From Basidiobolus meristosporus CBS 931.73 (Eukaryota > Fungi > Basidiobolomycota), in assembly GCA_002104905.1 (NCBI GenBank), contig MCFE01000622.1, positions 1-51,964 on the forward strand: a stretch of 51,964 nucleotides of DNA. The letters run 5' to 3'. The notes under the pieces are model-generated. The model made no database searches. It was not told where the DNA came from and saw only the letters and a program-made list of their open reading frames with translations. Positions 29,596 to 51,964 of this stretch are shown in pieces. The number at the start of each line of letters is the position of its first letter. The first letter of the stretch is position 1. The position numbers were made by a program, and so were the translations under genes.

Positions 29596-30756
29596 ATGAT
29601 GGAGCAGAAATATCGTTATATCAGGGAACTTGGCAAGGGGGCTTATGGTCTAGTTAGGTCTGCAAAGTGTCTAGCCACTGGAGAGGAGGTTGCCATCAAG
29701 AAGGTGACCAAGATATTCGACAAAAAGCTTCTGGCCAAGCGGGCATTGAGAGAGCTGAAGCTGTTGAGGCACTTCAATGGCCATGAGAATGTGATCTCTG
29801 TGTACGATATGGAGCTGATGGACCCGACCAAGTTCCAAGAAATTTATCTAGTGCAAGAGTTGATGGAGGCTGATCTCCATCAGATAATCCGTTCTAAGCA
29901 GACCTTGACCAATGCACACTACCAATACTTTGTTTATCAGATTTGCCGCGGCCTCAAGTATATTCATTCTGCCAATGTTCTCCACCGGGACTTGAAGCCA
30001 GGGAATCTCTTGGTCAATCGGGATTGCGAGTTGAAGATATGTGATTTCGGACTGGCCAGGGGATTTGTGGATGCCACCAAAAATGAGACCGGCTTTATGA
30101 CGGAATATGTTGCCACTCGTTACTACAGAGCGCCGGAGATAATGCTCTCCAATCAATCCTACACCAAGGCGATTGATTTATGGTCGGTGGGCTGTATTTT
30201 CGCGGAGTTATTGGGGGGCAAACCTTTATTCAAAGGAAGAGACTATGTGGACCAACTGAATCAGATTCTCGGAATCCTAGGCACTCCGGACGATGCCGTT
30301 TTAGAAGGGATGGGTAGCGAGCGAGCCAGGAACTACATTCGCAGTTTGCCCAAAATGGCCCGGATCCCATTTGCTCAACTATTCCCAAAGGCTACTCCAT
30401 TGGCGCTGGACCTTTTAGATAAATTCCTAAAGTTCGATCCCAAACAGCGAATCACCGTAGAGGAAGCACTGGCCCATCCCTATCTAAAGGCTTATCACAA
30501 CCCCAGCAATGAGCCAGTTCACAGCCAGGAATTTGACTTCTCCTTCGAGACTGTAGAGGAGATGGCAGATATTAGACAGCTGATTGTTATGGAAGTTGAC
30601 TCATTCAAATCAGAGTTGAGCAGTGCCCACGACGACCAATCATCCTCCAGCAGTGATGATTTCTCGGCAGTCACCATAAGCGAACCAGTCTTCATGAACG
30701 CCAAAGGCCACCCACAAGACAGTTCATTCGTTCAGCAAATACCTACACACGTATAA
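29596..30756 (+). CDS. MPK1: MAP kinase, Slt2/Mpk1 (cell-wall-integrity) type, intronless (386 aa)
   Basis: [31 protein letters not shown] activation motif, [33 protein letters not shown] typical of Slt2/Mpk1. Confidence 0.9.
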
Positions 30757-31925: not shown

Positions 31926-34296
31926 CTACATGTTCAATATTACGATGTTATAGCTAACACAGAAGAGGAGTAGCACCACCGATGCCACGAGAACACATAG
32001 GAACCAAATGTGTTGGCGCTTGTATCCAGGAATCTCGCCCCACCACCAAAACAAATGCTGGGCGAATGCTACGCTAATCATTAGATTAATGAATGGGAAC
32101 AAAAACACCAAACGTACTGGGAGTGGTAGCCTATGGTAGCTAGCCAACTCGATACAACCGTATCGGTAAATCACAAGTCCAATTAAAGTGGCAAATCCCA
32201 TGTATGACCACGCCAGTAAGCCTGGTACATGTGGGAGTAGCTGGAACGAGAAATTGTCCTCCGTCTTCTCGTAATCCTCTAGGACAGCATCATCTGGGAT
32301 GACATACTTCTTCTTCAACTCCTCCAGACGTTCCCGCTTTCTCTTTTCCTCCTCGGTTTTGCTTTGGATTTGTTCGAGTGTGTCGTCCTCTTCTTCATCA
32401 TCCGAGTCCTTGGCCTTTTTACCCTTCTTAGGCTTCGCGGATTTCTTCTTGGCTTGCTGATCGGTTTTCTTGGTGCTATCCTTGGGCTCTGGAGGGGATA
32501 TAACACTTACTACCATACAAATGGTGTAGTAGATACCCTGCACCAGCATAATACCACAGGCCATGACGAAGGCGGTTATTTGGAAGATTCTTCTCTCTTG
32601 CACCTCAAGGCGTTCAAACACAATTGGGTGATCAAAGGCACCTCCGTACAAATAGGTAACTTCACCAAGTGAGCGGTCATATTTGAAAGTGAAATGGCGT
32701 TTGCTCATGTAACCAGGAGAAGCAGGATCAAAGACCTTGAAAGTGTGTTGGGCAACCTCAAGCAACTTGATTTCACGTGTTCCGAAGATTGGTTCTAACG
32801 ACTCAGGAATCAGAATGCCAATGATATTATCGGCATAGGCCTTGACCTTGACCTGCTGGTTGAGAGCAGCCAGTTTCTCAAAGGAAGAATGGGAGATACT
32901 GATAGGCTTGAAACTGGCTATGTACACATCAGCACGGTTGTCCCAATGGGGTACAAGACTGAAAAACTCCTCGTCGTAAAGATTTTCTTCGGCGGCAGAC
33001 TCATAGAAATAGTTTAGGAATCCCTCGATAAAATTCTTGCGGATGGTGTTGTTGTTGGTGTTGTATGATAAGAATATGCCAAGATTTTGCTCCGGGAATA
33101 GAGAAAGCTGGCTGCTGTGACCAACCAACTCACCACTCTGAGAGATCATTCTCAATCCTTTTCCATAGTTTGTTTCGAAGAAGCCGTAGCAAGTGCCATC
33201 AATGGCATCGTGATGTGCGAATTGACGGGCGTGCATCATTTCGACAGTATCAGAGTCAAGAAGGCGGCGGTTTTCGGATATCTTTCCATGGTTCAGGTGA
33301 GCAATCATGAATTTGGTGATATCGTCAGCGGTACTGGCCAAAGAGCCTGCTGGAATAAGCGCAGAATAAAGATCAGGATTTCTCTCGAATTCCCCGGTCT
33401 TCGGGCTCTTACGATAGCTCTTCGACATACTGTATTTGTCAGAAGAGCTCAATTTTACCATCGTGGGATCAGAAGCATTGTGAGGAGCAAAGGTACTGTC
33501 GCTCATTCCCAAAGGCTCCAAAACATTGAGGCGAACATACTCGGTGAAAGGAAGTTGAGTTATCTTGCTGATAGCATGTCCAAGTAAAAGATAGCCATGG
33601 GGTGTATAACTTTGAGCCAAATCGAGTTCGCGAACTCTAATCGGGAAGTTCTCGAGAGCAGGGAGCAATGAAGCCTTAATCTAGAATCAATTACTTAGTA
33701 AAAGAAATCGCACTTGGGCACGGTGTAAGTGGCCTTACGTTTTGAGGTTGATTAGTCACCGCCCCGAGTAACTTGCCATCCAAGCCAGAAGTATGTGTAA
33801 GCAGATTAGCTGCGGTTACGTTTCCAGGGTAGTTGTTTGAGTAAAGCACGAATTTATCCTCATCCCCTTTCGTCAAGTATACGTTGATATTTTGATTCAG
33901 ATCAAGGTGGCCGCTTTCGTAAAGCTGTAGCAACGAGGTCGCGGTAAAAGCCTGTGAAACTGGGCCGACCTGAACAACGGTGTACGATGGATCAGAGGGG
34001 ATACGCTCCTCCAAGTTGGAATAGCCATATCCTCCTTTGTATAGTACGGTGCCGTCTTTGACAATCGACACAATCGCACCTGTGAAAGTAGGAAGCAAAA
34101 ACAAGATTGAGTACAACGTTTGACAAGAATTGAGATCTGTTGGGCTAAACTAACCGGGAAGTTCACCCTGTTCAACTAGTTGATTAAAGAACTCATCAGA
34201 GTACTTCTTCACTTCATCTAAGGTTATTTCACGTGAAGCAGCTTGCCCGAGTAAGATAGACCCGAGAGCAAGTAATGTAGGTGTGAGGAAAAGCAT
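31926..34296 (-). CDS. Beta-lactamase/AmpC-family (serine hydrolase-fold) membrane protein, catalytic motifs lost (~745 aa, 3 exons)
   Basis: Exons 34296-34155, 34079-33739, 33680-31926 (total 2238 nt, in frame). Signal peptide; LPGAIVSIVKDG..Y.GGYG, LLTHTSG, PAGSLASTADDITKFMIAHLN; four C-terminal TM helices. Confidence 0.88.
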
Positions 34297-35557: not shown

Positions 35558-36269
35558 ATGACTACTCCTTATAACCACGGACAGTATCCAGCAGGCGGTG
35601 CTTCTTATATCCCACCGCCGGGATACGGCATATATCCCTCGTATGGTGAGCAAAATCCTAAAGCATTGGCCTTTTCATCCACAAAAGCGCTTCAATCTCA
35701 ATACAAAAATATATCCTATATGCTGCTCTGTCTGCAGATTGTATGGCCGTATTTGATTGGAATACCTATTTGAATCCCCATCAATTAATATGCCTTTATT
35801 TAGGCATCAAGCTTGCTGAATATATTGACTCTCTATAGATCCATATCGGCCACTCAGCAGATTCCTCTACACCTAGCATTAAGTATACTGCTTCTGTGTG
35901 CGAGTGGATTGCGTTTACTGGCATGTGTCTTTGGGATTGTGGGGATATATAGGGTAGGTGGACATATCGTACATAGGTGATGCGATTTTTCTTATCTTTT
36001 GAGTCTTAGGAATCGTACAGATACCTCTACGCTTATTTGGCTGTGATTGGGATTCAATTGGTTCTATCAGTGGCCTGTATTGTGCTCTCTTTCATTGTGG
36101 GTAATGTTGGCACTGGGGTGTCCATAACAGTCCAAGTAAGTGCGACCTTTCCAAGTATATTTCATCGCATAAGTACTAACTGGTTCGAATGCAGATCCTG
36201 ATAGACAGCTATTTCTTATATCTATTTTACCATCAGCTAATCTATTACCAGTCTAATAGAGCCATCTAA
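35558..36269 (+). CDS. Small 5-exon membrane protein with N-terminal PPxY motif (~149 aa)
   Basis: Exons 35558-35645, 35738-35748 (11 nt), 35804-35953, 36010-36135, 36195-36269 join in frame (450 nt). Three to four hydrophobic segments. Confidence 0.65.
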
Positions 36270-36868
36270 ATGTCTATATAATATGTTGAGAATATCCGTC
36301 TCACTCTTTACATGTGGACTCCTAACATACACCTGTATTGTGAATTCATAGTGGTTTGCTACCTAGCAATGCTAATTATATCATTTCCAATCAATATTTC
36401 ACAAATCACACATGTAATTAAATTCAAGGTTATCATGGCTAGGTTACAGGTGGATCACAAATTCACAGTACTTCTACGGATTACGATCAGTCCCGGGAAA
36501 CACAACGTAGTTGGGCCAGATCATGTTTGATAGAAGGAGAATCTTAACGATATGGTTTTATATAGGGTGCCAGCATTATTACTGATCTGTGCTCCACATC
36601 TCAATGGAGTTGCGCTATCCTGCCATGAAAGTTTGGTATCATGATTTTGAGAGCTCATTCAAACAGAACGCCGATATTTGTCCTAAATACAATCAGTCAC
36701 TAAATGCACCCTTTGTGATTGCTCATTAGTAATGATAAATTGTATAATGGTTACTTTGCATAGCTCATCACAGGGCCGTGAGAACGTTGTGTGACGTAGC
36801 CTTGCAGCCTTCTTAATAGATGCCATGCTGTAAACTCGCACTTGAAGCTTCCCAACACTCTCTAAATC

Positions 36869-38539
36869 ATGTACCGATATGGTTTTAGCAAATCTTGTCC
36901 TGAACTCGTTTCAAGAATCCACACTCCGTTATTTCAGCAAAGGAACTGGTCCCGTAGTTTAACAACGGCGAAAACAAACGTCGTGGCAAAAAAACCTGCT
37001 TACGAATCAAGGTAGCACCACTTTCTAGAGTTCTTTTGGAAACCCTCTCCATTGTTAAGCCCACGTCGCAACATAACAGGACCACCTTGACGGAGACTAT
37101 TCTTCCAAGCCATACTGATGATCGTGGTTTTGCGTATGGCGGCCAGATACTAAGCTGGATAGATATTGCTGCAGGGATTGCCGCAAAAAGGCACGCCTCT
37201 GTGTTTAGTGTACGTGTGTTTGTTCTAGCCAATCATTATACCCAAACACTAACTTGAGGGCTATCTTAGGTCACCAGAAGCATGGATAGTGTTCATTTCT
37301 TGCATCCAGTAAGCCAAGGGGATATATTGATTCTGAATGCTTCCGTCAACAGAGCTTGGAATACTTCTATGGAGGTAAGTGAATGACTATTTCGACGGCG
37401 TTGAGTTTTCATTAATTTAAACCATTACAAGGTTGGAGTTAGAGTGGAGACCGAAGACCTCGTTACTGGAAAAAGAACGCATTGTAAGAACGCTCAAACA
37501 TTTCATATATTGCCCATATTCATATACTTCTAGGTTGCTACGCGTACTTGACATTTGTGGCTTTGAACCCAGAGACTGGGAAGACTACTACCGTCCCGAA
37601 AATCATCCCTGAAACTGAATCAGAGAAAAAGAGATATGAACAAGCTGAAGAGCGACGCCAGCGACGACTATCTCGCTTCCAACCACGGGATAACGAAGAG
37701 AAACGGGAGATCATGAACTCCCTTGCGAAAGAGGAATGGAAAAACGAGGACCTTTTGAGTAATGATATTCCCTGACTCCAATGCTCACCCACCCATTCAT
37801 TCTTTTATGAAAAACAGTTCAGTCGCCAGAATCCAAGGGCTGCGTGTGCTCCAAGCCCAATGTCTTTACAGCAAGCAAGACCATTCAGGATTCGTACTCC
37901 GAAGTAGTGGAGCTTGTTTTACCCCAAGATGCCAATACCCTACAAATCACATTTGGTGGCAAGATAATGCAGTGGATAGAGTATTGTGCGATTATAAGCG
38001 CCAGTCGTCATTCCAGATCTTACCTCATAACTGCGAGGTAGGTTGAAGCATTGCTGTTTGACGCTCCAAAGCCAGCGCTGCTAATGCATGCATCAAATGT
38101 AGTGTGGACACATTGCAATTCTACAATCCTACTTATGTCGGCGATATCATCACAATCCGCTCATTCGTGTCTGGCGTATTTAATTCGAGCCTGGAAGTAT
38201 CCGTAGTCGTTGAAGCTGGTAAACACATTCAGACAAATATAATCAGTTATTTAAGAATGACTTCATGAACCCCATATCTAGAGAGTCCACTCGATTCGAC
38301 AAAGCGGATCTTGACCAACGACGCTTATGTAACAATCGGTAATCCCAGCTTGTATTGCACATTATCGGAAGAGTCTAATGAATCCTATTACAGTTTCCGT
38401 TGATAAAGCCAACTACCCATATGGTGGATTGCCTGCACTAAAGCCAAGAAACGAGAAGGAGGAAAGGTATATTGCTAAAAGTGTTGAGCGAAGGGCAAAC
38501 AGACTTCAAGAAAGACTGATGATATCCAAAAATCACTGA
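36869..38539 (+). CDS. Double-hotdog acyl-CoA thioesterase, multi-exon
   Basis: Two hotdog domains: ILPSHTDDRGFAYGGQILSWIDIAAGIAAKRHA...SMDSVHFLHPV...SME|VGVRV, and VLPQDANTLQITFGGKIMQWIE...SVDTLQFYNPTYVGD. Several GT-AG introns (37210-37269, 37375-37431, 37484-37533 and others). 5' end uncertain. Confidence 0.85.
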
Positions 38540-38804: not shown

Positions 38805-40581
38805 TTAAGCTTGAGGCTTTTCGTATGCAGCATTGTGCACTTTTTGTGCGCGACCTGAAGGATCCGCAGGGCATCCCCAATCTCCACGGGGGATCCATCT
38901 AACTACAGACTCTGTACAAGCATCTTGAGGGAAGTGTTGCTCAAAAATCTCACGATACCAGTATGCTTCCTTGGTCTGAGGGGTGTCCTTTGGCCATCTC
39001 TTAGCAGCGTTAGCAAACTTCTCATCGCTAACCAATTCTTCGGCTTTTGATTTCAATGAATCAATCCAACTGTATCCCACCCCGTCCGAGAATTGTTCTT
39101 TTTGACGCCACAGGATGCTATCGGGAAGGTATGGTCTGAGATGTGGGTCATCGGAAGTATCGAAGGCTTTACGGATGATGAATTTCTCCATACGCCTAGT
39201 ATCTCCCCCGAATAGTTTCTCATTAGGGTCAACGTTCATAGCTATCTCCAAAAACGATTTGTCTAAGAAGGGAACTCTAGCTTCAACCCCCCAGGCCATT
39301 GTAGACTTGTTCGCACGCAGGCAATCGGATGTATGAAGGTTCTTTACACGTGCAACAGTCTCTTCGTGGAAAGAGGCAGTGTCTGGAGCTGCATGGAAAT
39401 AAAGATATCCACCAAATACCTCATCAGACCCCTCACCAGAAAGCACCATCTTTACGCCCATGGCTTTGATCTTGCGGCTTAACAAATACATTGGAGTGCT
39501 GGCACGAACAGTAGTAACATCGTATGTTTCAAGATGGTAAATGACATCAGCAATGGCATCATGACCCTCTTGAAGGTTGAATGTATATTCGTGATGGACA
39601 GTTTTCAAGAACTTCGCTGCCTTCTTAGCAGCAATCAAGTCTGGTGAGCCAGGAAGTCCAATCGAGAATGAATGCAGACGAGGCCAGGTGTAGAGGCCAC
39701 TTGGATCCACATCGTCGTCAACTTCAATAGCTCTCTCCACAGCTAGTTTAATCGACTCACGACAAGCAATTGAGGCAATAAGACTTGAATCCAAGCCACC
39801 ACTGAGAAGAACTCCATATGGCACCTCACTCATCAGTCTCTTACGAACAGCCTTCTCTAAACCTTCTCTCAGTGCTTTGTAGTCAATTGGGTTTGTAGGA
39901 ATTTTCTTGCCATCCCACCAGGAAGGAGTGAAATAGCGAGTTGTTTCCCCGGTGGCGGAATCGTAGATGTGTCCAGGAGGGAAAGCGATGATTCTGTCAC
40001 ATTCTTCGTTAAGAGCTTTGAGTTCGGAAGAAAAGTAAACAGTCTCAGGATAGGCCGAGTTCCAGCCTTGGTAGAGGGTAGTGATACCAATAGGATCACG
40101 AGCAGCGATGAAGCGATTCTTTTTGGTATCCAGAAGAACGAAGCTGAACATACCGTCAAGCTTCTTTACTACCTCAGCATCAATCTCGTTATAGAGATGA
40201 AGAATAACCTCGCAGTCAGAACGGGTCTTCATCTCAGTAGCATTCTTCAAGCTCTTTTCCAAAGCTTTGTGGTTGTAGATCTCTCCATTGACAGATAGAA
40301 TGAGTGTTTCATCATCATTCACAATTGGTTGAGCACCAGAGTCAACACCAACAATGGCCAAACGCTCATGGCACAATATATGGTTATTCTTGATTACGCA
40401 TCCGTTCCAATCAGGACCACGGTGTCTAAGTCTGTGAAGGCAAGATCATAGGCAGTCAATAGGGATACATGTCTACCATGTTGATTATAACATGCACGTA
40501 CTTCTTTGAAAGCTGAAGGGCACGTTGGCGGTAGGCTTGGACATCGCCTTGGTAGTTGAAGACAGCGAAAATGCCGCACAT
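38805..40581 (-). CDS. ASN1: Asparagine synthetase (glutamine-hydrolysing), 568 aa
   Basis: N-terminal MCGIF (Ntn amidotransferase), [42 protein letters not shown]. Exons 40581-40502 and 40431-38805. Confidence 0.96.
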
Positions 40582-42352: not shown

Positions 42353-43147
42353 CTACATTTTGGGCTTACGGAGGCGCGCAAATACTCCATCCAAAGCTTT
42401 AACGGTGCGGGGTAGCGATAATAGCTCGAAACCACCTTCTGCTTCTTTGGTGAGCCTCTCCTCGTTACCCCAGACATCTGCAAATTCGTTACGTAAGAAA
42501 CCTTTGGTGACCTGTCTACCAGCATCAGGTGTCTTTAATAGCTGCTTCATAATGCCCTCTGCTGTTGGCAGAACCTGATCATGCTCCTTGACAATTTCAT
42601 CAATTAGTCCAATCTCCTTTGCTTGCTTTGTATCTAGTAGTACTGCGAACTGAAGGATTTTGTCTGCTTTTCCTTGGCCGATAATCGAGGACATAAGCTT
42701 GATCCATATATTGGGGACAGAAATACCAAGAGCAACTTCGTTTAAGCCTATGTATCCGTCCTCAGACATTACCCGATAGTCACAACACATTGACAAGCAA
42801 CAACCACCAGCTGGGCAAGCACCCTTGATTGCAGATATGGTGATAAGTTTGGAACGGTACAGTCTAGCTAAGAATTGATTCGAAATCTTCCAGAACTTAG
42901 TATACCGTTCTTTAGAAGTCTTGGGGGCGTAAAGCTCCAGTAAGTCATTTCCGGCGGTAAAAATAGGACGGCTAATGCCAGATTGGAAAATAACGCCACG
43001 GACTTTGGGATTGTTCTCCAACTCATCTAAAGCAGAAAGAAGTTGCACCCAAACGTCCATATTCATAGAGTTTACAGGCTCGCGCTTGATAGTGATAACA
43101 GCATACCCATCCGATTTGATATCGGCAGTAACATATTGAGAAGGCAT
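42353..43147 (-). CDS. ECI1: Crotonase-family enzyme, delta3-delta2-enoyl-CoA isomerase-like (264 aa)
   Basis: PVNSM, IFTAGNDL, AIKGACPAGGC.LSMCCDYRVM, IGLNEVALGI. Confidence 0.85.
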   Translation of the reverse strand: MPSQYVTADIKSDGYAVITIKREPVNSMNMDVWVQLLSALDELENNPKVRGVIFQSGISRPIFTAGNDLLELYAPKTSKERYTKFWKISNQFLARLYRSKLITISAIKGACPAGGCCLSMCCDYRVMSEDGYIGLNEVALGISVPNIWIKLMSSIIGQGKADKILQFAVLLDTKQAKEIGLIDEIVKEHDQVLPTAEGIMKQLLKTPDAGRQVTKGFLRNEFADVWGNEERLTKEAEGGFELLSLPRTVKALDGVFARLRKPKM

Positions 43148-45114: not shown

Positions 45115-46305
45115 ATGAAACCCCCAAATATAGCTATCAGGATTTTTCGAGTGAAGGTAAGGTGTTATACCGGTTCAAACACAGTCTACGCTGCTTTAAC
45201 GAACAGTGAAGAGTCCCCAGGTAGCCCGGAGGAACAATACCCTTCCCCACCAGTTGAACAATTGCCTCAAAAGAAGAAGCCAGGAAGAAAGCCGAATCCT
45301 GCCTCCCCAGCTGTACGTAAAGCACAAAATCGTGCAGCCCAAAGAGCCTTTCGCGAGCGAAAAGAGAGGCACCTCAAGGAGTTGGAGGTGTGTGTGAAGG
45401 AGCTGCGCGACAACCAACATAATGTTCATAGTGAGCTTCAACGAGAAAACCAAAAATTACGTTATCTGATTCAAATACTGAAGAACGATAACGTACAATT
45501 ACGCAGCATTATATCCGGATTTGGATCTTTGACCGAAAAAGCATCAAGTAGGGAAATGATTTCACCTGCAAATGGTATAGCGGCTTCCTCCTTTATACCT
45601 TCAAGTGGGACAAGCATGGAAGGCTCCATTATCACGCCGGTTCCTTTAGCTAGAGGTTACCTTACCCCGACTTATCAGGAAGAACCAAATACCTTTTCTG
45701 GATTATCATCGGGCAACGGTTCAGACCCTGGATTATACGGCAGCCCTTGTGCATCTAGGATGGATTGCTATACACCAGCGTCTTTTACATCTTATACCCA
45801 CTTTGATTCCGAAACCTGCTCGTTCGACAGTAGCGAGAGATCCTTGGGCTCACAGACGGAGGATGATCTTCAGCAGGACATGTTAGATGGTAATATACAT
45901 ACTGTGTTTCCCGACGGAATTACTCTCACTATTCCTCCGCCTGACTTCGGTCGCCTTAGTGGTGGAGTTGCCATTAGCTTGATACCCGAAGTCCGAGAGC
46001 CTAAATATATGTTCAAACACTACGATTCCAGGATTGACAAAGTTCCCAGTGAGAAGTTGAAGGAATTGATGATAGAGCAACAGGGTAATTACGATCTTGA
46101 TGAACTCTGGGATCTCTTTATGACCAAAGCCATATGCCATGGCGATCCTCAAGACCCTTCAGCCTGGGAATTGCCTGATGAATTCTATACAAGATTCCCA
46201 ATGCTGGTAGATCCTGCTCTGAAGGCAAGAGAGAGAATGCGGACTGCATGGTGGCGTTTGAATGGGAGGATCAAAGCTGGTGACAAGATTCGTAGCTTTG
46301 TCTAA
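45115..46305 (+). CDS. bZIP transcription factor (AP-1/Yap-like basic region) with conserved C-terminal domain resembling DUF3425-type proteins
   Basis: KPGRKP...RKAQNRAAQRAFRERKERHLKELE followed by leucine heptads; C-terminal YDLDELWDLFMTKAICHGDPQDPSAWELPDEF. Start codon uncertain (possible donor at ~45157). Confidence 0.85.
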   Translation: MKPPNIAIRIFRVKVRCYTGSNTVYAALTNSEESPGSPEEQYPSPPVEQLPQKKKPGRKPNPASPAVRKAQNRAAQRAFRERKERHLKELEVCVKELRDNQHNVHSELQRENQKLRYLIQILKNDNVQLRSIISGFGSLTEKASSREMISPANGIAASSFIPSSGTSMEGSIITPVPLARGYLTPTYQEEPNTFSGLSSGNGSDPGLYGSPCASRMDCYTPASFTSYTHFDSETCSFDSSERSLGSQTEDDLQQDMLDGNIHTVFPDGITLTIPPPDFGRLSGGVAISLIPEVREPKYMFKHYDSRIDKVPSEKLKELMIEQQGNYDLDELWDLFMTKAICHGDPQDPSAWELPDEFYTRFPMLVDPALKARERMRTAWWRLNGRIKAGDKIRSFV

Positions 46306-51333: not shown

Positions 51334-51351
51334 TTAGGGTTAGGGTTAGGG
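51334..51351 (+). repeat. Interstitial telomeric tract (TTAGGG)3
   Basis: ttagggttagggttaggg lies between units 2 and 1. Confidence 0.9.
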
Positions 51352-51707
51352 GGGAGGGAAAGTCACCAAGGTAGGTGAAATTTAGGGTTAGGGGGAGACA
51401 GTCACCAACAGGTGAAATCTTTATCTCAGTTGAAACAAAGAAGCCAGCGCTACTGTTGTAGCTTTGATACAAGAGTGTGTAGCTGAGGGGAATTTGTAGG
51501 TAAGTTAATAAGAAGTGATGATAGTTCTTCAGTGCTCAAGACACTGTTCAGTGGGATGGGGGGTAGCAAGAGAGGTAAGAATGACTTGTGAACAACATTA
51601 ATGAGGGGAATGTGATAAGGATTGATACTCATCATAAAGGGAGTGTGCTGCTGCAGATATTGCTGCCAAAGGTCTGTCAAGTACTTCAGGTAGGCCAGCT
51701 TGGGTTT
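51352..51707 (-). mobile_element. Telomere-associated unit 1: shorter 5'-truncated copy capped by the telomere
   Basis: About 350 bp, roughly 90-95% identical to unit 2. Frame open 51707-51450 (KPKLAYLKYLTDLWQQ...KLQQ*). Confidence 0.5.
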
Positions 51708-51742
<35 letters not shown>

Positions 51743-51964
51743 GGTTAGGGTTAGGGTTAGGGTTAGGGTTAGGGTTAGGGTTAGGGTTAGGGTTAGGGTT
51801 AGGGTTAGGGTTAGGGTTAGGGTTAGGGTTAGGGTTAGGGTTAGGGTTAGGGTTAGGGTTAGGGTTAGGGTTAGGGTTAGGGTTAGGGTTAGGGTTAGGG
51901 TTAGGGTTAGGGTTAGGGTTAGGGTTAGGGTTAGGGTTAGGGTTAGGGTTAGGGTTAGGGTTAG
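51708..51964 (+). repeat. Telomere (TTAGGG)n, ~43 units
   Basis: G-rich strand runs 5'->3' to the window end, with one TTTAGGG variant at ~51720. Confidence 0.99.

Follow-up and report, generated by a model that had tools for sequence, protein, structure and literature searches.

A putative lineage-specific pseudoenzyme in a fungal family of membrane-anchored S12-type serine hydrolases from Basidiobolus

Gene structure, catalytic motifs, and protein architecture

The stretch of DNA analysed in this study (referred to as the window) comprised 51,964 nucleotides of Basidiobolus meristosporus CBS 931.73 (contig MCFE01000622.1), and the gene in question was located on its minus strand at positions 34296-31926. 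Its three exons encoded a 745-residue product, which belonged by homology to the Pfam family PF00144 (MEROPS S12 fold), carried four transmembrane (TM) helices at the C-terminus, and had replacements at four catalytic positions of the fold. The features of the gene were as follows, in the order of transcription.

34155..34296, minus strand: exon 1; ATG at 34296; signal-like hydrophobic N-terminus and first helix of the mature protein; phase-1 end within a Gly codon, donor G/GTTAGT
34080..34154, minus strand: intron 1; 75 nt, GTTAGT...CACAG, phase 1
33739..34079, minus strand: exon 2; encodes the N-terminal portion of the beta-lactamase (S12) domain, including P-V-S-Q, the degenerate SxxK motif, at 33963-33952
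33681..33738, minus strand: intron 2; 58 nt, GTAAGG...TTCTAG, phase 0, with a branch-site-like TACTAAG
33680-31929, minus strand: exon 3; stop codon at 31928-31926
33006..33680, minus strand: exon-3 residues 1-225; remaining, C-terminal portion of the beta-lactamase domain; Y-T-P at 33608-33600 and Q-S-G at 33140-33132
32589..33005, minus strand: beta-rich middle domain; exon-3 residues about 226-364, placed from the AlphaFold2 model of the ortholog P0144 (see below)
32496..32588, minus strand: TM helix 1; exon-3 residues 365-395 by hydropathy scan, corresponding to helix 526-557 in the ortholog model
32223..32495, minus strand: loop joining TM1 to TM2, Lys-rich and then acidic; about 90 residues, DSDDEEEDD...KKYVIPDDA...DYEKTE.NFSF; predicted to be cytoplasmic
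31929..32222, minus strand: TM helices 2-4; exon-3 residues 487-505, 518-544, and 554-584; a conserved WWWGEIPGYKRQH loop joins TM3 to TM4

The open reading frame (ORF) and the splice signals of both introns were intact, and an in-frame TAG was found directly after the donor of intron 1. Exon 1 was aligned with that of P0144, the ortholog from Basidiobolus ranarum, across all 47 codons (57% identity). The hydrophobic, signal-like segment at the N-terminus was MLFLTPTLLALGSILLGQAA, as judged by eye. The TM1-TM2 loop contained 19 Lys, 14 Glu, and 11 Asp in the 86 residues scanned, and W and R.H/Y of the TM3-TM4 loop recurred in the bacterial homologs examined. No further copies of the gene were found within the window.

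All three catalytic motifs were degenerate when read from their codons: CCA GTT TCA CAG (P-V-S-Q) for SxxK, TAT ACA CCC (Y-T-P) for YxN, and CAG AGT GGT (Q-S-G) for HxG. The nucleophile Ser was replaced by Pro, the Lys by Gln, the Asn of YxN by Pro, and the His of HxG by Gln; YxN retained its Tyr, HxG its Gly, and the first motif its second Ser. In HMMER alignments to proteins of solved structure (2qmi, 4gdn, 7v21, 4y7p, and 2dns), these residues faced the catalytic motifs: P-V-S-Q was opposite S-x-x-K of Pab87, an FmtA-like protein, and LACTB; Y-T-P was opposite Y-S-N of alkaline D-peptidase and D-amino-acid amidase; Q-S-G was opposite H-S-G of Pab87. Among 88 family members aligned with MAFFT, the Ser, Lys, and Tyr were each present in 88/88, the His in 87/88, and the Asn in 83/88, and none of the 142 complete sequences fetched lacked the Ser or Lys of SxxK. 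Since Ser, Lys, Asn, and His were replaced, none of the signatures of the S12 enzyme class (SxxK, YxN, and H/K-x-G) was present in the window protein, and, judging from the sequence, the acyl-enzyme mechanism would no longer be usable. Stretches that are hallmarks of the fold were retained: LLTHTSG, PAGSLASTADD..KFMIAHL, and DGTCYGFFETNYG.

PF00144 matched exon 2 (E-value of 4e-16, 59.5 bits, profile positions 19-109) and exon 3 (8e-17, 61.8 bits, positions 142-313) above the cut-off of 27 bits, and the two exons combined covered positions 19-313 of the 329 in the profile. The NCBIfam models for AmpH, D-aminopeptidase, and class C enzymes were matched only weakly, below threshold. In the loops and TM region, no Pfam family exceeded its curated cut-off (a weak FAM176 match reached 19.7 bits versus 31.5). 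For the window protein itself, each exon was analysed separately. The fold was modelled with AlphaFold2 for P0144 from the 88-row alignment, with a mean predicted local distance difference test score (pLDDT) of 86 and a predicted template-modelling score of 0.85. In this model, the S12 domain was followed by a beta-rich domain (about residues 395-520) and then by a long TM helix. The chain continued through a disordered Lys-rich/acidic stretch and a helix to three more TM helices; within the loop, pLDDT was below 50 in the Lys-rich part, which was followed by the helix. A Foldseek search with the model ranked two-domain proteins resembling penicillin-binding proteins (PBPs) at the top, namely, Pab87, IS11, the DL-peptidase Lip3, and SurE, followed by an FmtA-like protein, LACTB, EstG, D-aminopeptidase, and ClbP, and the sequence search agreed. 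According to the model, the beta-rich domain sits where Pab87, IS11, and SurE carry their second, C-terminal domain. The nearest clusters in the ESM Atlas were bacterial, with template-modelling scores of 0.73/0.86 across residues 19-746, including the membrane part. The architecture of a signal-like N-terminus (or export signal), an S12 domain, a second beta-rich domain, and four C-terminal TM helices with a charged TM1-TM2 loop was thus that of the fungal family, and, apart from the loop, corresponded to that of the bacterial membrane-anchored S12 type.

Within the TM1-TM2 loop, an insert of about 70 residues (KK..KAKDSDDEEEDDT...EEK..ERL.EL.KKYVIPDDA..DYEKTE.NFSF) was highly conserved in all three Basidiobolus copies, dead or intact. 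It was found neither in the bacterial homologs examined nor in the chytrid homolog described below, and was Basidiobolus-specific. Since this charged loop is common to the intact copies, it cannot be a gain tied to a new role of the dead one. Given the N-terminal signal, the S12 domain would be extracytoplasmic (at the cell surface or in a lumen), and the Lys-rich/acidic loop would be cytoplasmic.

A preliminary description of this DNA, made from the letters alone, had already reported most of these features. The three degenerate motifs were found at the positions it gave, and the gene model and hydropathy scan agreed with its intact ORF, two introns, and four C-terminal TM helices. The Lys-rich/acidic insert, previously put at ~80 residues, was present with a length of about 90. 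The signal peptide was borne out as far as a hydrophobic, signal-like N-terminus judged by eye, and the statement that an AmpC-like domain with C-terminal TM helices is a bacterial architecture agreed with hundreds of bacterial proteins.

Orthology with B. ranarum, lineage-specific loss, and origin of the family

The only close relatives in the protein collection were two B. ranarum proteins with about 60% identity: K7432_002755 (P0001) and K7432_006522, for which there was a short isoform (P0002) and a full 746-residue model (P0144). P0144 corresponded exon for exon to the window gene. P0002 (708 residues) began with residues derived from intron 1 (MLIYLLPFLG...) and was without the signal-like exon 1; its start is probably mis-annotated. 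By tblastx, the window was collinear with L002, the locus of K7432_006522. A 4HBT thioesterase gene (80-97% amino acid identity) and an unknown-function gene (about 60-70%) occurred in a common order and orientation upstream of the beta-lactamase-fold gene in both; these upstream neighbours occupied 35633..38526 in the window (unknown-function gene, 35633-36263; 4HBT thioesterase gene, 36830-38526). At the P0001 locus (L001), no synteny with the window was found outside the gene itself. In the tree, the window protein grouped with P0002 with a Shimodaira-Hasegawa-like approximate likelihood-ratio test (SH-aLRT) support of 85, and P0001 was placed outside; the positions and phases of the introns were identical in the window, L001, and L002 genes. 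Because of the flanking synteny, tree grouping, and identical intron positions, the window gene is the positional ortholog of K7432_006522.

Both B. ranarum proteins carried S-I-S-K and H-G-G at the first and third motifs, and Y-S-N (P0001) or Y-S-D (P0144) at the second. Since their motifs were intact, the four replacements arose on the window's own branch, and the sequence comparison indicates that the catalytic loss is young and specific to the window lineage, after the split from B. ranarum. The preliminary description had proposed examining whether the motif loss was conserved in orthologs; this was not the case, with SxxK being kept by both the positional ortholog and the paralog. Among conserved columns, the loss was also focused on the active site. 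In 105 alignment columns with a conservation of at least 85% across 85 bacterial homologs, the window protein departed from the bacterial consensus at 35 (one of which was a split-codon artefact), P0144 at 26, P0001 at 24, and the chytrid protein P0085 at 27. The departures found in the window protein only were S87P, K90Q, S188T, N189P, S203T, I302L, H343Q, L449I, and L741I: every non-conservative one was a catalytic residue, and change was enriched at catalytic columns (Fisher p = 0.003). Catalytic residues were thus lost that are kept in active relatives, as is expected of a pseudoenzyme. P0144 itself had Y-S-D instead of Y-S-N at residue 189, a state found in 3/88 family members, and given this, the constraint on YxN may have been loosening even before the other losses of the window copy.

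In the protein searches, the only eukaryotic relatives were the Basidiobolus genes and one gene (P0085; L044 8001-12170) from the chytrid Quaeritorhiza haematococci. It encoded 834 residues with intact motifs, spanned about 4.2 kb with several introns, and was flanked by a ribosomal L7Ae gene and a RasGEF gene. P0085 also contained long extra inserts, and its C-terminal hydrophobic region was unlike that of Basidiobolus. Both introns of the window gene were common to the chytrid gene: intron 1 in phase 1, inside the Gly codon of P-G/A before the VKDG strand, and intron 2 in phase 0, between S162 and I163 of P0144, equivalent to S232 and V233 of P0085. Since both introns matched in position and phase, the fungal genes appear to descend from one intron-bearing eukaryotic gene, which either pre-dated the chytrid/zoopagomycete split or was passed between fungi; the shared introns also mean that the family is old in fungi. 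The fungal proteins formed one clade on a long stem (SH-aLRT of 96, with a long-branch warning), and no bacterial sister was supported in trees omitting either fungal group.

All other relatives seen were bacterial: hundreds of proteins of 640-670 residues had the same architecture with 25-41% identity to the Basidiobolus proteins, and a metagenome scan recovered only bacterial-type relatives with 38% identity or less. A bacterial origin of the family is therefore plausible, but ancient if it occurred at all. Recent horizontal transfer from bacteria to the fungus was not supported, given the introns shared with the chytrid, the conserved fungal synteny, and the lack of a resolved bacterial donor clade. 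Of the bacterial derivation suggested in the preliminary description, at most an ancient form is consequently retained. Bacterial imports into Basidiobolus have been the subject of a previous study (PMC7466969), and our results correct the tempting reading of this gene as one of those reported. In a literature search, no description of a fungal membrane-anchored S12 family of Basidiobolus and a chytrid was found.

The remaining surroundings of the gene were as follows.

29596-30756: protein kinase ORF
38805-40376: asparagine synthase ORF
42353-43147: enoyl-CoA hydratase ORF
45115-46305: bZIP factor ORF
51340-51418: degenerate 39-nt unit holding TTAGGG, just inside the telomere
51708-51964: telomere, TTAGGG x 42.7 copies, at the end of the window

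Since these neighbours and the 4HBT thioesterase are ordinary genes, this subtelomeric stretch is not made solely of fast-evolving families. In B. ranarum, a deoxycytidine monophosphate (dCMP)/cytidine deaminase gene (L002 7047-7733) lay between the 4HBT and unknown-function genes (L002 6470-8065). The corresponding gap in the window (36263-36830) was only about 570 nt with no deaminase match, and the deaminase gene seems to have been lost here. The neighbours of L001 were of the same kind as those of L002, and the gene order of both loci (B. ranarum GCA_040143965.1) was alike: cation ATPase, dCMP deaminase, small unknown gene, and beta-lactamase-fold gene. The beta-lactamase-fold proteins of L001 and L002 were 64% identical, and the shared order points to an old segmental or whole-genome duplication.

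Selection on the window branch and possible functions

Selection was assessed by a three-taxon maximum likelihood (ML) codon model (GY94 type, F3x4; custom code) with a separate ratio of nonsynonymous (dN) to synonymous (dS) substitution rates (omega) for the window branch. The one-ratio omega of this model (0.105) agreed with the pairwise ML values from Biopython (about 0.12-0.15, with a pairwise dN of 0.26-0.30). The results for the gene and its parts were as follows.

Whole gene: omega of 0.156 for the window and 0.086 for the others (difference, p = 0.095); omega = 1 rejected (p = 1.6e-4)
Beta-lactamase domain: omega of 0.10 for the window and 0.074 for the others (difference, p = 0.46); omega = 1 rejected (p = 2e-4)
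Middle domain and TM part: omega of 0.32 for the window and 0.075 for the others (difference, p = 0.025); omega = 1 not rejected (p = 0.145)

The omega of ~0.15 on the window branch was obtained from three taxa with saturated dS, and selection before and after the loss was inseparable in it. The terminal branches of the protein tree were similar in length: 0.28 for the window and 0.27 for the ortholog. A further estimate came from the reading frame, in which 3.8% of random point changes would make a stop codon; the probability of no stop under neutrality was 0.014 at 5% divergence and 2e-4 at 10%. The four catalytic codons had accumulated at least five nucleotide changes in 12 sites. With the whole gene neutral since the loss, the joint probability of these changes and an intact frame was less than about 1e-5 at any divergence (a rough Poisson estimate), and such neutrality is therefore unlikely. 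From these substitution patterns, we conclude that purifying selection has probably acted on the whole gene, including the dead domain, during most, if not all, of its separate history. The preliminary description had asked for dN/dS < 1; the estimate for the window branch lay below 1, within the limits of three taxa and saturated dS. The observation that it had named as refuting repurposing was only half made: the ortholog retained SxxK, but neutrality was rejected on the window branch.

We consider it reasonably probable that the window protein, a member of an old fungal family of membrane-anchored S12-type serine hydrolases (class C beta-lactamase/DD-peptidase fold), has become a pseudoenzyme in its own lineage. 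Several observations weigh against this. Because dS was saturated (>1.5), omega was rough, with branch length and omega trading off, and a very recent relaxation is possible; for the part that follows the beta-lactamase domain, a window-branch omega of 1 was not rejected; Tajima-type tests with P0001 as the outgroup gave a modest excess of window-only changes, both in the beta-lactamase domain (46 versus 26, p = 0.024) and overall (102 versus 74, p = 0.04); and the gene is subtelomeric, about 17.4 kb from the telomere. A rival reading is a young pseudogene: having become functionless since its divergence from B. ranarum, the copy would now be in decay, its frame being intact only for want of time. 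The 1.8-fold excess in the beta-lactamase domain, the neutral rate not being rejected in the C-terminal half, the chromosomal position, and the retention of all or most catalytic residues by the ortholog and paralog are consistent with such decay. Nevertheless, omega = 1 was rejected for the whole gene and for the very domain that died, 744 codons were free of stops with intact intron signals, the neutral time implied by the substitutions in the catalytic codons would have yielded many stops, and the window-only changes were mostly conservative and only mildly enriched near the motifs (8/34 versus 38/304 columns, p = 0.07). We accordingly regard decay as distinctly unlikely.

Even if the gene is maintained, its product need not bind any ligand alone: it may form hetero-oligomers with a still-active paralog and regulate or localise it. 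Solved relatives oligomerise (by entry titles, a Pab87 octamer and LACTB filaments), B. ranarum has two paralogous loci, so that the genome of the window probably has more copies, and the copies have a conserved TM and loop module in common. We give this non-catalytic partnership, taken as the sole role, a small though appreciable chance. A rewired enzyme, relying for example on the Ser left in P-V-S-Q or on the surviving Tyr with a different base, would fit the strong constraint on the beta-lactamase domain and the persistence of the Tyr of YxN, second Ser, and Gly of HxG. However, the Ser and Lys of SxxK were invariant in the 88 aligned and 142 inspected relatives, and four catalytic positions have changed at once, with Pro at that of the nucleophile; this possibility is hardly credible. 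A receptor or sensor role is conceivable. In its most specific form, a surface-exposed, membrane-anchored S12 D-peptidase/esterase would have been converted in this lineage to a non-catalytic receptor. In the animal gut, it would trap D-amino-acid peptides, lipopeptides, or peptidoglycan fragments of bacteria, or beta-lactams, and report them through the conserved acidic/basic cytoplasmic loop. The fungus would thus sense bacteria with a protein of the penicillin-binding fold, which we think improbable. The pseudoenzyme proposed in the preliminary description stands in so far as Ser, Lys, Asn, and His were lost, the ORF was intact, and neutrality was rejected. The loop, to which a signalling role had been assigned, and the TM module are equally present and conserved in intact relatives and so do not mark a repurposing of the dead copy.

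As a lineage-specific pseudoenzyme, the window copy would have replaced Ser, Lys, Asn, and His after the split from B. ranarum, while keeping the Tyr and nearly all structural residues of the fold. The substrates of its relatives are D-amino-acid peptides, esters, lipopeptides, or cell-wall fragments, and the dead protein may most likely act as a non-catalytic binder of the class of ligand that its ancestors cleaved (D-amino-acid peptides or esters), or alternatively as a partner to still-active family members; trafficking or signalling may proceed via the same conserved TM and loop module as in the active relatives. Two sister fungal species appear to capture the switch from enzyme to pseudoenzyme. 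The intact ortholog provides a natural control, and a direct comparison of the two proteins could reveal which function selection keeps once catalysis is lost. The present analysis also defines a family of membrane-anchored S12 proteins that is old in fungi and is represented by Basidiobolus and a chytrid.

Comparison with known systems

The closest counterparts of the window protein, P0144 and P0001 of B. ranarum, shared about 60% identity over the full length, the same three exons, and the same succession of parts (a signal-like N-terminus, then the S12 and middle domains, then four TM helices with the charged loop), and differed in the motifs described above. Bacterial membrane-anchored S12 proteins (about 640-670 residues; annotated as 'CubicO group peptidase, beta-lactamase class C family' and uncharacterised) had the same domain order, including the C-terminal TM helices, with 25-38% identity to exon 3 of the window and 30-41% to P0001, in alignments covering as much as 75% of the query. 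In contrast to the window protein, the motifs were intact in all those inspected, their genes had no introns, and the TM1-TM2 loop was short and basic in those examined.

Among characterised proteins, Pab87 (2qmi), the IS11 esterase (7spn), and the SurE cyclase (6ksu) were among the best structural matches of the ortholog model, aligning over both extracytoplasmic domains (510-522 columns), and Pab87 was the best sequence match as well; however, these proteins are soluble and catalytically intact and have no TM module. ClbP, the S12 peptidase that activates colibactin (7mdc, 3o3v), also has an S12 domain followed by C-terminal TM helices, which are three in number. Its E-values were 1e-13 by sequence and 1e-17 by Foldseek to the ortholog, but only the catalytic domain aligned, and ClbP is active and lacks a second beta-rich domain.

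In BlaR1/MecR1, an extracellular domain with the PBP fold is joined to TM helices and a cytoplasmic loop, similar to the arrangement in the window protein. The sensor domain of BlaR1/MecR1 needs an active Ser, which is acylated by the drug, and the cytoplasmic part is a zinc protease. A sensor of this type was rejected for the window protein, in which the Ser was replaced by Pro and no Pfam family was found above the cut-off on the loops. Dead proteins with the penicillin-binding/beta-lactamase fold are already known in bacteria. MipB of Pseudomonas aeruginosa has an AmpC-type fold without SXXK, with degenerate YXN and KTG motifs and extra C-terminal beta domains, and is an envelope-associated protein that has been proposed to be part of a polymyxin sensor complex (PMC10936184). 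MipB differs from the window protein in being a bacterial lipoprotein without TM helices that works with the barrel protein MipA (PMC10936184), and the likeness between the two may be regarded as a functional analogy only.

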